The translations under genes were made by a program, and so were the position numbers. A stretch of DNA of 64,000 nt from Rhodosorus marinus CCMP1338 (Eukaryota; Plantae; Rhodophyta), in contig JAMWBK010000010.1 of NCBI GenBank assembly GCA_029953675.1, forward strand, positions 186,001 to 250,000, given 5' to 3'. Each line of letters opens with the position of its first letter. Within the stretch, counting starts at the first letter, position 1. Below, one piece after another: positions 32,523 to 54,874 of the stretch. The notes beneath the pieces were generated by a model, which made no database searches, had not been told where the DNA came from, and saw only the letters and a program-made list of their open reading frames with translations.

Positions 32523-33187
32523 GTTGTAACCTGTGCGGTAGCCACGTGCCGTGCGGTGAATTCGGTGGACACCTGTTGGCATCCTGTCCGCAGGTCCAAG
32601 GGGCCCGGACTCGTCGGCATACGCGGCTCAACCGGTTGCTGTTTTGCTATCTTCGTTCCCAGATGCTGGACACGGACCGGGAGGTGGAGTATGAGGTCCC
32701 TCTGAACGTGGCCACGGCAATTACTGATACGGCTGACGCACCAGGGGTGCAGCGGGTGGCGGATCTAGTTGTGACTGATCTCAGCGCCCGTCGGAGTGAG
32801 TACGTTGACCTTTCTATTCCTTGTCCTCAGGCGACCAGATACCTACCCGCATCTGCACGCTGCCGTCGCGCTGCGGCTCGGTCAATGCGGCAACTGAAGG
32901 AGTCCCATTACGCTGCAGCTATGTTGGACTCTACGCTCCACGATTCGGTCTTGTCCTACCGGTTTGTTCCACCCATCATCGAGTGCTTTGGTTTAGTTGA
33001 TTGTATCGGCTCTCGCTGGCTTCGTGGGCTCTTTCGTCACAGCCCAAGTCGTCTTGCTAGCCTCCTCACGGAGCTGTCCTAGACCTTATGGCGTTCCAAC
33101 GCGGCTTACTGTTCGACGCGCGTCATCAGCGTCTTGTTTCTCGCTTCTTAGGGTAGTTAGGCTATGATAAACTGATGATGATGATGA
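32523..33187 (+). mobile_element. 5'-truncated CRE-like element, family B (CCHC + REL), ending GGGTAGTTAGGCTATGATAAAC(TGA)5
   Basis: CNLC..H...C knuckle, RRHTRL, VADLVV, YVDLSIPCP, FVPPIIECFG. The (TGA)n tail is at 33173-33187. Confidence 0.88.
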
Positions 33188-35120
33188 GTACATTGACCTC
33201 TCCATCTCTTGTCCTCAGGCGACCAGGTACCTGCCTGCGTCCTCTCGGCGTCGAGGAGCTGCAGCTCGGTCCATGCGGCATGTGAAAGAATCGCAGTACG
33301 CGGCAGCCATGTCTAACCCTACCTTCAGATCCGTTTATTCAGAAGCTAACTACCCTGAGAAGCGAGAGACAAGACGCTGATGACGCGCGTCCACAAGCAA
33401 AGCAGAATTGGAGCGCCACAGGGTCAAAGAAAGGTCCGTGAGCAGACTATCTAAACGCCCTGGGTCGTTGCGAAACAGAGCTCACAGCGCGAGAACCTAC
33501 ACTATCTATCAAGCCAAAGCACTCAATAATGAGGGGGACGAAGCGGTATGTCACCGCCGAATCGCGAAAGGTAGGGTTTGACATCGCTGCCGCGTACTGC
33601 GAATCTTTCACTTGCCGCATGGACCGAGCTGCAGCTCCCCGACGCCGAGCCGACGCAGGCAGGTACCTGGTCACCTGAGGACAAGGGATGGAGAGGTCAA
33701 TGTACTCACTGCGACGCGCATTGAGGTCAGTCACGACGAGATCCGCCACCCGCTGTACCGCTAGGGGGTCACTCTCATCAGCAATTTCCGATGCCACCGC
33801 CAGAGGGACCTCATACTCCACTTCTCGGTCCGTACCGAGGGATTGAGAACGAAGGTAGCGGAAAAGCAAGCGGTTGAGCCGCGTATGGCGTCTGGTCCGG
33901 GCCCCTTGAACCTCCGCACAAGACGCCAACAGATGCGCAACATAATCACCCCACGGCACATTGGCCCCGCACAATGCGCATCGAGAATCCCGCTCAACAG
34001 GCCAAGGGGGTTGCGGCAAGCCCAGGTAAAGTCGTAAGCTTACACGAAGTTCGAGATCGGTAAGCGCCAACCGCGGATACGCAGGTATGACTGTGAAGAA
34101 ACGGGAGCTGAGACTCCCCCCCAAACCGCGCAGGCGAGCCAAAGTCGACACCGAGCACGAAGGTAAACTCAGAAGGGTGGCATACGAGTCCCGATGTATG
34201 TCCCACGAAAGGGTTTTTTGGATTACATCGGTCCTCGAAGGGGAGGGGCCCGACCGGGAAACGCCCTCCTCTGGCGGTCTCGACGGCACAGCCACGGCGT
34301 CAATATCCTCGGCAGTTTCTACACCACTACCAACACACGGTGCTGTGGCAGAGACTCCCGAACGCTGGCCACCGAGGGAGTCAAGAACTGCCGCCCAGGA
34401 ATCGCAACGAGCCTGGGTACCACTCGGCAGGGCGGTACATTGTTGAAAAGCGGCCACCAGTTCCGCAAAAACCCTCCCGAGCCGTGGAGCGAGAGCACCG
34501 TCTAGCCGCCCAACCCGAAGTCCACTCAACAAACCACTCACATGCGGATCACACTCCATAGACCATGTATTAAGCGCATTGGCCCACGAACTCACCACAG
34601 CCGCCGGCTGGATCGCCGCGTAAGATCCCACAGCCAGCCCGCCCAGCCGCACGGGCAACGCGATCTGCCGGTGAAGGACGTCCTTTTCTGCATCCACCAG
34701 CGTGCCTAGCACGTCCCTCGCTCGTCGGTCTGCGCGGAGCGCCAGCCAAGACCCCCACTCGGAGGGTAGCTGCCGCAAAAAATAGGTCAACCTCTGGCAC
34801 GCGCTGAACCGGAAGATGAGCCGAGCGGTCTGGAGGTAGCCTTCTGGGAGACTGCACAGCTCAGTCAGGAGCTCATCATGATGACTCAGGAGCGCGGAGA
34901 GGCTGCGTTCAACAAATATCGGAGTGCCTACGGGGACACCGAACAGAAGGAAACCCTCAGCTCGCCAAATACCTCGGAACCTGGATGGAACCGCGTCCGC
35001 GGTGCAGTGAGACCCCCCCCCCCAGAAGTCGCACTTGGCGTGGTTGATACGCAGCCCCACCAAGGAAGCCACCTCGCCGAGAAAATCGTAGGTCGGCACC
35101 TTTCGCGATTCGGCGGTTAC
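33188..35120 (-). mobile_element. Family A element (33328-35097, minus, 1.77 kb, post-RT region + CCHC + REL) nested in a short plus-strand family A piece
   Basis: ORF 33447-35099 encodes the region from just after the RT catalytic motif through CCHC and REL. The 3' end reads CTCTG/CTTCTGAATAAACGGATC. The host piece breaks at ACCTTC (33321-33326) and resumes at ACCTTTCGCGATTCGG (35098-). Confidence 0.88.
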
Positions 35121-35191
35121 GGTAGCCTACGTGCAATAGTACAAAGCGTACGAGCAATGTACAAAGACTCAGCACGTCAGACATCGACGGG

Positions 35192-35292
35192 ACTGTAGCG
35201 CGTCATCTACGGTCCGTTTATTCAGAGACACCGGCGCTTGTCTCTCGCTTCTCAGGGTAGACAGGCTCTGAATAAACGGATCGAACTGTAGC
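35192..35292. mobile_element. Tiny composite of family A 3' ends (15-nt antisense end + ~50-nt sense end)
   Basis: TCCGTTTATTCAGAG (35213-35227) and CTCTGAATAAACGGA (35266-35280) are inverted. ACTGTAGC occurs at 35192-35199 and 35285-35292. Confidence 0.7.
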
Positions 35293-52536: not shown

Positions 52537-53174
52537 GTCATCATCATCAGTTTATCAGCGCCCAACTACCCTGAGAAGCGAGAAACAAGACGCTGATGAC
52601 GCGCGTCGAACAGTAAAGCCGCGTTGGAACGCCATAAAGTCAAGGACAGCTCCGTGAGGAGGCTAGCAAGACGACTTGGGCAGTGACGAAAGAGCCCACG
52701 AAGCCAGCGAGAGCCGACACAATCAACTTCAACCAAAGCACTCGATGATGAGTGGAACAAACCGATAGGACAAGGCCGAATCGCGGAGCGTAGAGTCCAA
52801 CATAGTTGCAACGTACTGGGATTCCTTCAGTTGCCGCATTGACCGAGCCGCAGCGCCACGGCAGCGTGCAGATGCGGGTAGATATCTGGTCGCCTGAGGA
52901 CAAGGAAAGGAAGGTCAACGTACTCACTCCGACGGGCCCTGAGATCAGTCACCACTAGATCCGCCACCCGCTGCACCCCTGGTGCGTCAGCCGTATCAGT
53001 AATTGCCGTGGCCACGGGCAGAGGGACCTCATACTCCACCTCCTGGTCTGTGCCCAGCTTCTGGGAACGAAGATAGCGAAACAGCAACCGGTTGAGCCGC
53101 GTATGCCGACGAGTCCGGGAACCCTGGACCTGCGGACAGGATGCCAACAGGTGTCCACCGAATTCACCTCAAAG

Positions 53175-54550
53175 ACGTGACATCATAATCTACTCTACGA
53201 ACGCGGAAGACCATAGATAGTCTGCTCACGGAGCTTTTTTTGACCCTGTGGCGCTCCAAATTCTGCTTTGTTTGTGGACGCGCGTCATCAGCGTCTTGTC
53301 TCTCGCTTCTCAGGGTAGTTAGCCTCTGAATAAACGGATCTGAAGACCATAGGAGACACCTGGATGATGATCCGACACCTGGATACCGTCTTTTCAAAAT
53401 TGAGAAACAACTAATTATATACAAAGAGGTCGAAATGCGTTTTTGGTGTCCCCGAGACATAGTATTGTGGGTCACCTCGTTGGGAGTGGGCAACGGAGAG
53501 CGGACCCGGGCAAAGTAGCTGCTCTCAAGAATTGGCGAACCCCGGAGAATGTCCATGACGTAAGATCTTTTTTGGGAATTACTGGCTACCTACGCAACCA
53601 TGTACCGGAATTCAGCCTTGTAGCAGCACCTTTGACCAATCAAACGAAGAAAAATGTGACCTTCCTATGGGGTCCTGAGCAGGAAGAAGCCTTTGACACC
53701 CTGCGGGAAAAATTGATGGCGCAGCCAGTCCTCCGAAACCCTGACTTCCAAAAAATGTTCATCGTACAACCGGACGCGAGCAATCGAGGAGCTGGGGCTG
53801 TCCTAATACAAAAAAATAAGACGGCGAACATCCAATCGCCTACTTTTCGAAGAAATTTTCGGATGCCGAAAAGCGATATTCAACGTATGAGCAGGAGCTT
53901 TATACATTGACAACTGCTATTCTCCACTGGCGTGCGTACCTGGAGGGGACCAGATTCGTTGTTCGCACTGATCACAACCCATTGAGATTCTTACAGCCAT
54001 CGTGCTTGCCGCTTCGTAAGTTCGATTTATATCGGTTAATGCCCTTTCAGTTCAATATCAACTATAAACAGGGCAAGGAGAATATTGCGGATGCGCTAAG
54101 TCGTCACGCCATACAACAATTAACGGTAGTTTCATCTGTACCAAATCCAGAGGGGCGGCAAGCGTACCTGCAGGATCCGGCGTTCAGTGACATCTTTGAG
54201 CATCCGGAGCGATACCGGCAGCAAGGATTTGTTCGGCGAAATGACTCCTTGTATTTGTGTAACCGAATAATGATGATGAATATGTGTTCCGGAAATCATG
54301 GTCACCGCTCTCCTCCAAAGTCACCATAATGAACCCGTCGCGGGACATTTTGGGATCACCAAGACCCGGAACCTGATTAAGAGAAAATACTACTGGTCAA
54401 CCCTGAAGCAGGATATCGAGAAATTCTTAAGAACCTGCGAAGCTTGCCAGAGGAAAAAACCACTCCGACACTCAGCAGGAAAGTTGAACCCACTGCCTAT
54501 TCCAGCCGGGAAATTGCAATCCGTATGGATGGATTGTATTACTAACCTAC
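53175..54550 (+). mobile_element. Ty3/gypsy pol fragment: RT C-terminus, RNase H, integrase H2C2 zinc finger (disrupted)
   Basis: DIIIYS..EDH..HL, DVRSFLGITGY, FLWGPEQEEAF, DASNRGAGAVL, HWRAYLEG..F.VRTDH.PL, HNEPVAGHFG.TKT...YYW...CEACQ. Truncated by a family A 3' end at ~54553. Confidence 0.92.
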
Positions 54551-54792
54551 CGATGACGATGATCCGTTTATTCGGAGGCTAACTACCCTGAGAAGCGAGA
54601 GACAAGACGCTGATGACGCGCGTCCACAAACAAAGCAGAATTCGAGCGCCACAGGGTCAAAGAAAGCTCCGTGAGCAGGCTATCTAAATGCCCTGGGTCA
54701 ACAGAGCTCGCAGCCAGCGAGAACCTACACTATCTATCACCAAAGCACTCAATAATGAGGGGGACGAACCGGTATGTCACCGCCGAATCGCG

Positions 54793-54874
54793 AAAGGTAG
54801 GGTTTGACATCGCTGCACGGATCATCATCATCATCATCATCATCATCATCAAAGGTAGGGTTTGACATCGCTGC
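54793..54874 (+). mobile_element. Tail-only insertion ACGG(ATC)10 with a 24-bp target-site duplication
   Basis: AAAGGTAGGGTTTGACATCGCTGC occurs at 54793-54816 and 54851-54874, flanking 54817-54850. Confidence 0.9.

Follow-up and report, generated by a model that had tools for sequence, protein, structure and literature searches.

The 64,000-nt stretch of Rhodosorus marinus CCMP1338 DNA analyzed here (hereafter the window; contig JAMWBK010000010.1 of assembly GCA_029953675.1, positions 186,001 to 250,000 of the forward strand) contains a nest of retrotransposon copies, which belong to two families, A and B, and terminate in the triplet tails (ATC)n and (TGA)n, respectively. As stated in the original prediction, which was made on this DNA and suggested that the two families could form a paired retroelement system, (TGA)n is the reverse complement of (ATC)n. 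Most of the nest was decomposed by mapping against reference pieces and by reading every joint, and filled sites were compared with empty paralogous sites to obtain the exact limits of several insertions, which are readable because paralogous copies supply the empty sites. The census of 3′ ends is confined to the window. Related 3′ ends were taken from seven retrieved transcriptome contigs (JGI 3300017118 and 3300016967), six of which have usable 3′ ends. An exact-pattern scan of metagenome contigs returned no further A or B copies, a protein-guided scan for further copies gave a single distant locus that was not usable, and a full-length protein search yielded three homologues only, all of them distant.

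The Elements and Their 3′ Ends

The reference A copy (33326–35098, minus strand; 1.77 kb) is 5′-truncated within the reverse transcriptase (RT) and carries, at 33447–35099(−), an open reading frame (ORF) of 550 amino acids (aa), which comprises the C-terminal part of the RT, a CCHC knuckle (CALCG...H...C), and the segment RVADLVV...EYIDLSI...K. The triad of the PD-(D/E)xK endonuclease (D80, D95, and K125) is invariant in the alignment with relatives. RVT_1 domain matches are located at 45390–46190, in a longer A copy, and at 7628–10543, the position of an intact plus-strand ORF of 971 aa that is 27% identical to A over the RT, knuckle, and endonuclease (E 1e-32). This distant relative of A contains an RT, a CCHC motif, and a clear restriction-like endonuclease (RHD, PDIV, DVTV, K), and may be an active member of a different family. 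A profile (A4) composed of the 971-aa ORF and 14 full-length relatives matches solved R2 proteins over a span that starts at the RT and takes in the whole endonuclease, with an E value of 8e-48, compared with 4e-22 for L1 ORF2p. One of the relatives, P0001, has an N-terminal C2H2 finger and no apurinic/apyrimidinic endonuclease (APE) domain; Exo_endo_phos was not matched in the 971-aa relative or in P0001–P0003, and the A and B copies themselves are all 5′-truncated.

Judged from their sequences, A and B are sister lineages of one retrotransposon without long terminal repeats (non-LTR type), of the R2 superfamily, which is characterized by a restriction-like endonuclease. The assignment to this superfamily follows from the order RT, CCHC, and PD-(D/E)xK, and from the R2 profile match being ahead of that to L1 ORF2p. 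The sister relationship, which had been claimed in the original prediction, is borne out by an identity of ~75% and by the common RT/CCHC/endonuclease ORF. All copies of both families in the window, which is part of a red-alga nuclear genome, contain frameshifts or stops. Coding fragments of the same superfamily also occur at 5135–5356(−) and 60959–61408(−), with 58% and 30% identity, respectively, to the 971-aa ORF.

Several other descriptions of the repeats were considered and discarded. A Penelope-like or LTR-like reading of inverted 690-bp units is contradicted by the ORF, which crosses the unit, and by the inversions, which are nested insertions with target duplications; additionally, the endonuclease is of the PD-D/ExK type, as opposed to the GIY-YIG type of Penelope-like elements. 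The ORF running through the unit and the nested insertions likewise speak against a non-autonomous element of 690 bp resembling a short interspersed nuclear element (SINE), for which no tRNA-derived SINE head was found. A presumed third family, C (~42894–44752 and 49330–50740), corresponds in fact to the 5′ region of two long B copies. At gathering thresholds, Rfam gave no ribozyme and no other RNA family.

The terminus of family A reads ...CTCTGAATAAACGG(ATC)n and is represented by 14 ends in the window, while that of family B reads ...TGATAAAC(TGA)4-5 and is represented by four, the latter at the places at which such ends had been predicted. Searches with the A motif GGGTAGTTAGCCTCTGAATAAACGG gave 11 matches when as many as 3 mismatches were allowed, whereas shuffled sequence led to an expectation of 0; the B motif GGGTAGTTAGGCTNTGATAAAC gave 4 matches, again against 0 expected, at 33151–33172(+), 40429–40450(−), 52250–52271(+), and 52550–52571(−). 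Three further A-type ends escaped the motif search (54817–54850, 53363–53373(−), and 56105–56130). When read together with their flanks, the motif-bearing A copies end in ...CTTCTCAGGGTAGTTAGCCTCTGAATAAACGG followed by (ATC)1-3, apart from one degenerate tail, ATCATCGTCATCGG, and the B copies end in ...CTTCTCAGGGTAGTTAGGCTNTGATAAAC followed by (TGA)4-5, the individual B tails being (TGA)5, (TGA)4 TGG TGA T, (TGA)4 T, and (TGA)4. The predicted range of n = 1–10 for the A tails is also found; a single unit is present in five ends, and the upper value, (ATC)10, belongs to a tail-only insertion (54817–54850), not to a long copy. Each family has its own tail, as had been proposed, and within the window the family predicts the tail type without exception (14/14 A ends and 4/4 B ends).

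Over the last ~650 bp, A and B are 74–77% identical to each other, compared with 91–98% within each family. The ORF of both families ends in ...LTELSLTLWRSN(S/A)AL..DAR.QRLVSRFSG, with the TAG inside GGGTAGTTAG as the stop codon. The similarity of A and B at the 3′ end is consequently mostly coding, and the 3′ untranslated region (3′UTR) measures just 16–19 nt: 19 nt in A (TTAGCCTCTGAATAAACGG, containing AATAAA) and 16 nt in B (TTAGGCTNTGATAAAC, containing GATAAA). A conserved 3′ RNA hairpin was sought with RNAalifold on 15 ends, for which 23 pairs were predicted with 0 compensatory changes in a region that is mostly coding. At 39459–39467, the sequence TTAAACTGG TGATGATGA looks like a B-type end reduced to its minimum (AAAC and TGA units); as it is not accompanied by a visible target duplication, the likeness may be due to chance.

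Insertion Footprints and the Map of the Nest

The copies range in length from 11 bp to >2.8 kb and have the 3′ end in common, with a variable extent of 5′ truncation. The nine A insertions for which target duplications were tabulated, including two tail-only insertions (8 bp and 24 bp), have duplications of 5–24 bp, and an ATC or GAT run is present in none of these targets. Intact 3′ ends combined with 5′ truncation and duplications of varying extent are what target-primed reverse transcription (TPRT) leaves behind. Since the comparison of filled and empty sites places the duplications at non-microsatellite sequence for eight A insertions, two of them tail-only, and probably for one B insertion, the tails were brought by the element.

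A 5′-truncated B copy (32520–33187, plus strand) has its TAG in GGGTAGTTAG, the 3′UTR TTAGGCTATGATAAAC, and the tail (TGA)5 at 33173–33187. The A fragment Q (33188–33325, plus strand) follows this tail directly, head to tail, and serves as the host of the reference A copy, by which it is broken at the CCTACCTT site. The reference copy has a tail of ATC (33328–33330) plus T or TG and the target duplication ACCTT(T)C. The remainder of Q (35099–35282, plus strand) contains an A 3′ end at 35255–35279 with the tail ATC, as well as a tiny inverted A-end piece at ~35201–35233.

The long minus-strand B copy (40410–44748), which extends from the RT to the 3′ end and has the tail (TGA)4 TGG TGA T at 40410–40428, contains two A insertions, both on the minus strand. 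The larger one (41186–42733; 1.5 kb) has (ATC)2 at 41190–41195, a 7-nt filler, AGTTTTG, and the duplication CTGCC; the smaller one (42751–42850; 95 bp) has (ATC)3 at 42751–42759 followed by TG, the duplication TACGGT, and empty counterparts at 50357 and 50617. A 250-bp A fragment (44749–45002, minus strand) with the tail (ATC)2 abuts the 5′ end of this B copy head to tail, and its own 5′ end lies at the hot spot CGAAAGGTAGGG. The block formed by the B copy and the adjoining A fragment (40410–45009) is flanked by TTTCTTGGGATC (40398–40409) and TTTCTTAGAATC (45010–45021), which agree in 10/12 positions (p ~6e-4). It is probably one B insertion with a target duplication at ordinary sequence, so that at least one B tail, too, would lie at an ordinary, non-repeat site.

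The longest A copy, P (45022–49330, plus strand; 5′ limit putative), has its RT at ~45300–46130, with frameshifts, and is split at 47166/48647 by a nested 1.5-kb A copy (47167–48636, minus strand), which shows the tail ATCATCA at 47167–47173, the duplication ACCCCCTTGG, and an internal tandem duplication of ~175 bp (junction at 47853–47859). The 3′ end of P (49300–49324, tail ATC(ACC)) runs directly into the long plus-strand B copy (49331–52284), which is 5′-truncated in the RT, ends in (TGA)4 T at 52272–52284, and contains an internal tandem duplication of ~260 bp (~50394–50655) along with two A insertions. The 150-bp insertion (50735–50906, minus strand) has the tail (ATC)3 at 50735–50743 and the duplication AGTTGTAACT, and the ~25 nt at its 5′ joint include an inverted copy of the flank; the 706-bp insertion (51460–52168, plus strand) has (ATC)2 at 52163–52168 and the duplication GAGCTGT, and three other B copies show its site empty. 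For P and this B copy taken together, a search for a flanking target duplication found none.

Further insertions follow toward the end of the window. The fourth B copy (52538–53171, minus strand) is 5′-truncated and ends in (TGA)4 at 52538–52549. A 132-bp A insertion (53214–53341, plus strand) has the tail ATC followed by T and the duplication GAAGACCATAG, and a tail-only A insertion of 11 bp (53363–53373, minus strand) consists of GG(ATC)3 with the 8-bp duplication GACACCTG. The A copy at 54550–55891 (minus strand; 1.3 kb), with the degenerate tail ATCATCGTCATCGG at 54550–54563, is interrupted at 54817–54850 by the other tail-only insertion, of 34 bp on the plus strand, which reads ACGG(ATC)10 and is accompanied by the 24-bp duplication AAAGGTAGGGTTTGACATCGCTGC. 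A very short A-type end of ~25 bp (56105–56130, plus strand) is made up of TAGTTAGGCTATGAGTAAACGG and ATC. Two older pieces lie beyond, both on the plus strand: a diverged 3′ fragment (60463–60598, putative boundaries) that is ~80% identical to A and B, and an old 3′ fragment (61750–61816) that ends in GTAAACGG and has no tail.

Three joints between A and B are spacer-free and head to tail in the same orientation, two from A to B (44748/44749 and 49330/49331) and one from B to A (33187/33188). In all three, a 5′-truncated element directly follows the tail of the other family, and one pair apparently shares a single target duplication.

The nest is surrounded and split by host genes, which encode an RRM protein (17451–18071), exportin-T (21657–24937), S-adenosylmethionine synthetase (27282–27932), ALAD (36575–37486), and GINS Sld5 (62024–62749). 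ALAD places the host among the red algae: the closest match with a species name, from Chondrus crispus, shows 66% identity, and a JGI transcriptome protein shows 83%.

Origin of the Complementary Tails

MAFFT alignment of the last ~130 nt of 15 ends places the tails of the two families in phase, with A reading AATAAACGG ATC ATC and B reading GA-TAAACTG ATG ATG A. The repeat starts at a homologous position in A and B, at the same distance from AAAC, and the comparison of AAACGG-ATC-ATC with AAACTG-ATG-ATG reveals a difference of one base per unit (C/G). ATC and ATG repeats are reverse complements because the AT dinucleotide is palindromic: read on the other strand, ATC gives GAT, which is a rotation of ATG. 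A single substitution in ATC can produce nine other triplets, and one of these, ATG, belongs to the complementary class. The complementarity of the tails is likely a by-product of a one-base change in a heritable repeat unit, and this estimate applies to the account as a whole, including TPRT and tails that are borne by the element.

According to this account, the tail would be copied from the RNA, and its length would be altered by internal initiation and by slippage of the RT on its template, while one C/G change in a founder copy would become the tail of the whole lineage. A change in a founder unit can spread to the tail of its lineage because tails often consist of one unit yet can grow, as in the (ATC)10 insertion with its 4-nt body. 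Preferential cutting at sites inside the elements' own relatives would produce the dense nest. A documented precedent is the eel LINE (long interspersed nuclear element) UnaL2, which has a (TGTAA)n tail and shows slippage on this terminal repeat as reverse transcription begins (PMC1636434). The range of n = 1–10 in A and the ACGG(ATC)10 insertion are consistent with slippage, which we infer for the A and B elements as well.

Details of the tails appear to be inherited. In a subfamily of A marked by CCAATTC (33331, 42760, and 53313), the ATC run is followed by T or TG in 3/3 ends compared with 0/8 of the others (Fisher ~0.006), which suggests that the bases past the repeat are templated by the RNA. 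The transcriptome contigs provide three A-type or A-like and three B-like 3′ ends in total: AAACGG is followed by ATC in L003(−), with three units, and in L004(−), with one, and AA(T/C)AAA is followed by (TGA)n in L006 and L007, while L005 ends in the related ATGA. Since both tail types recur in related red-alga contigs, they look old and heritable, that is, older than these species and stably inherited together with the type of UTR. The diverged fragment at 60463–60598 ends in AATAAACGG ATG GTG ATG TTG, an A-type UTR followed by ATG-like units; as an ATG-tailed intermediate it offers a hint at most, its boundaries being uncertain.

Several points weigh against the one-base account. The presence of the tail in the RNA and the slippage are deduced from a window that holds no intact A or B copy, and only four B ends are available, of which one has a putative target duplication. 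The direction of the change between ATC and ATG is not fixed, given that the sole possible intermediate (60463–60598) has an uncertain boundary. At ~1/9, the chance that a change reaches the complementary class is low enough that selection may have had some part. Finally, neither the AGTT joints, three in 14 A ends, nor the three spacer-free A/B joints are random, and both lie outside this account.

The paired system put forward in the original prediction, in which complementary tails let the RNAs or cDNAs of A and B pair and thereby cause cross-priming, mutual targeting of tails, or tail-guided template jumping, has in its favor that the tails are exact complements, that A and B are intimately nested with three spacer-free joints, that R2-type RTs are known to jump between templates (PMC8857657), and that one related contig shows an A-type tail joined to an internal TCATCAG site, at which annealing would be possible. 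However, cross-priming of (AUC)n RNA on (TGA)n DNA, or the reverse, would leave the new copies inverted, tail to tail against the partner, and the search for a B end with an inverted A end within 80 nt gave 0 matches among the 18 ends of the window and in 11 related loci. No resolved A target contains the partner repeat, and the single putative B target lacks it as well; none of the four B tails is interrupted, and A inserts into A as readily as into B. The A/B joints are all head to tail, an orientation in which the tails cannot pair, since ATC and TGA are not complementary to the relevant strands there. Three AACT-GATGAT joints, which had been taken to mimic the B terminus, do exist (41186–41195, 44745–44754, and 50731–50743); however, B termini are involved in none of them. 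At 50735, the AGTT forms part of the 10-bp target duplication; at 44749, it is coding sequence of the long minus-strand B copy, homologous to AGTTGGAAC in P; and at 41190, it belongs to the 7-nt filler AGTTTTG between the tail and the duplication CTGCC. Moreover, the likeness sits on the strand that would require an antisense B RNA as template. Together with the in-phase difference of one base, these observations make pairing through the tails very unlikely. Even less probable is a related proposal, that selection keeps the tails complementary and that annealing of RNA with RNA or with DNA tails through (AUC)n and (GAU)n results in two-partner hitching, recombination, or homing; what speaks against it is drawn from only 18 ends within a single 64-kb window.

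The remaining explanations concern the source of the repeat itself. The original prediction had alternatively invoked an ancestor that targeted microsatellites, with a flip in polarity. Spelled out, the targets of this ancestor would have been (ATC)n/(GAT)n arrays, and one lineage would later have entered in reverse and kept the opposite strand as its tail. Many endonuclease-bearing lineages of the R2 superfamily are repeat-specific, some for microsatellites (PMC4640811), both tails belong to one repeat class, and two B tails continue into degenerate TGG TGA or TTA TGA units, all of which would suit such an ancestor. This reading is nevertheless unlikely and not needed: the present insertions lie outside microsatellites and lend it no support, one substitution per unit suffices, the equal distance of the repeat from AAAC is not predicted by a flip of strands, and related species have the two tail types side by side, linked to UTR types as they are here. 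It is unlikely that the tails arose independently and are complementary by coincidence. With 20 strand-specific triplet classes, the chance of an exact complement (~0.05) is not negligible; however, the two tails begin at homologous positions and match unit by unit in the alignment, and relatives in other red algae have both types. That the tails are simply microsatellites that existed at the insertion sites beforehand finds an indication in the degenerate extensions beside two B tails and in nothing else, and it is exceedingly improbable. For A, it is refuted by the empty paralogous sites of eight insertions, which contain no ATC/GAT run, and the A target duplications are at non-repeat sequence, so that this condition, named in the original prediction as one that would refute it, does not do so. 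Furthermore, the period-3 runs of ≥12 nt in the ATC/TGA class are accounted for by the four B tails, one tail-only A insertion, and one unrelated (GAT)4 at 56570.

Joints, Hot Spots, and Relation to Known Elements

The three A/B joints may have been formed by end-to-end template jumping of the RT, although the insertion of a second element exactly at the 5′ joint of the first fits them too. R2-type RTs are able to jump end to end between templates in vitro (PMC8857657).

The positions of the insertions point to recurrent cutting. Within antisense A, two insertions lie within 1 nt of each other (33325 and 54816) at CGC^G^AAAGGTAGGG, and two further breakpoints (45002 and 55966) are within ~10 nt of the antisense-A hot spot CGAAAGGTAGGG (33318–33325 and 54793–54816), which hints at an endonuclease preference for a target within the elements' own family. 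Three sites begin with AGTT, and most target duplications begin with GA or AG; cutting apparently takes place preferentially before GA/AG (CGCG^RAAG, ^AGTT), with hot spots at CGAAAGGTAGGG and GCGCGTCATC^AGCG. A further joint recurs in which AAACGG and 3–8 nt are followed by GATGACGCGCG, which is antisense to a conserved site lying ~55 nt short of the element's 3′ end; this joint occurs at 35201–35233 in the window, at 1385–1410 in L001, at 765–790 in L003, and near 140 in L004(−). Near 1230 in L003(−), the fusion is between an (ATC)3 tail and the sense side of the GATGACGCGCG site. The recurrent joint could represent a second hot spot, snap-back synthesis, or a chimera of transcriptome assembly; the latter is possible for the contig joints because the contigs are transcriptome assemblies.

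In overall organization, A and B resemble the R2 superfamily (R2, R4/Dong, NeSL/Utopia/Togen, CRE, and Hero), with which they share a single ORF in the order RT, CCHC, and PD-(D/E)xK, and the footprints of TPRT. Most LINEs of this superfamily are site-specific, and several home into microsatellites, such as Dong in (TAA)n, Togen in (TG)n, and some Hero families (PMC4640811). In contrast to members of the superfamily that are tied to ribosomal DNA, small nuclear RNA genes, or microsatellites, A and B insert at varied sites, with hot spots in their own family, and they are further set apart by a red-alga host, a 3′UTR of 16–19 nt, and a triplet tail; the comparison is made at the level of the superfamily. 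Like Dong, Togen, and Hero, A and B end in a short tandem repeat; however, the tail of those elements corresponds to the target array, whereas the eight A targets, like the single putative B target, lie outside repeats.

Tandem-repeat tails are already well known in other groups of LINEs, among them the I factor with (TAA)n and the CR1 and L2 elements. As in UnaL2/L2, I, and CR1, the tail of A and B is a repeat of variable copy number, (ATC)1-10 or (TGA)4-5, which follows a conserved 3′ end, and the likely mechanism, initiation within the repeat and subsequent slippage, would be shared with UnaL2-type LINEs. The latter groups are of the APE type and have a longer, structured 3′UTR, whereas the endonuclease of A and B is C-terminal and restriction-like; thus, the resemblance is mechanistic only. 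Chimeric retrocopies such as those of L1 and U6 are products of template jumping by the RT. The joints described here resemble such chimeras in being spacer-free, in having a 5′-truncated B after an A tail, and in one pair with a single putative duplication; as stated above, an A insertion exactly at the 5′ joint of B would account for the A/B joints too. In a host that has received little study, A and B combine an R2-type protein with a triplet tail, a minimal 3′UTR, and non-repeat targets with hot spots in the elements' own family.

R2-type LINEs are the best-understood models of TPRT and are in development for gene insertion, while their non-animal relatives are poorly described. In this red-alga lineage, the near absence of a 3′UTR, the heritable triplet tail with a one-base change between sisters, and the repeated cutting of the elements' own family are notable features, and the nest could serve as a natural system for studying what sets the 3′ end of the RNA and the start point of reverse transcription. 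A broader lesson is that complementary tails can come from one substitution if the repeat unit holds a palindromic dinucleotide.

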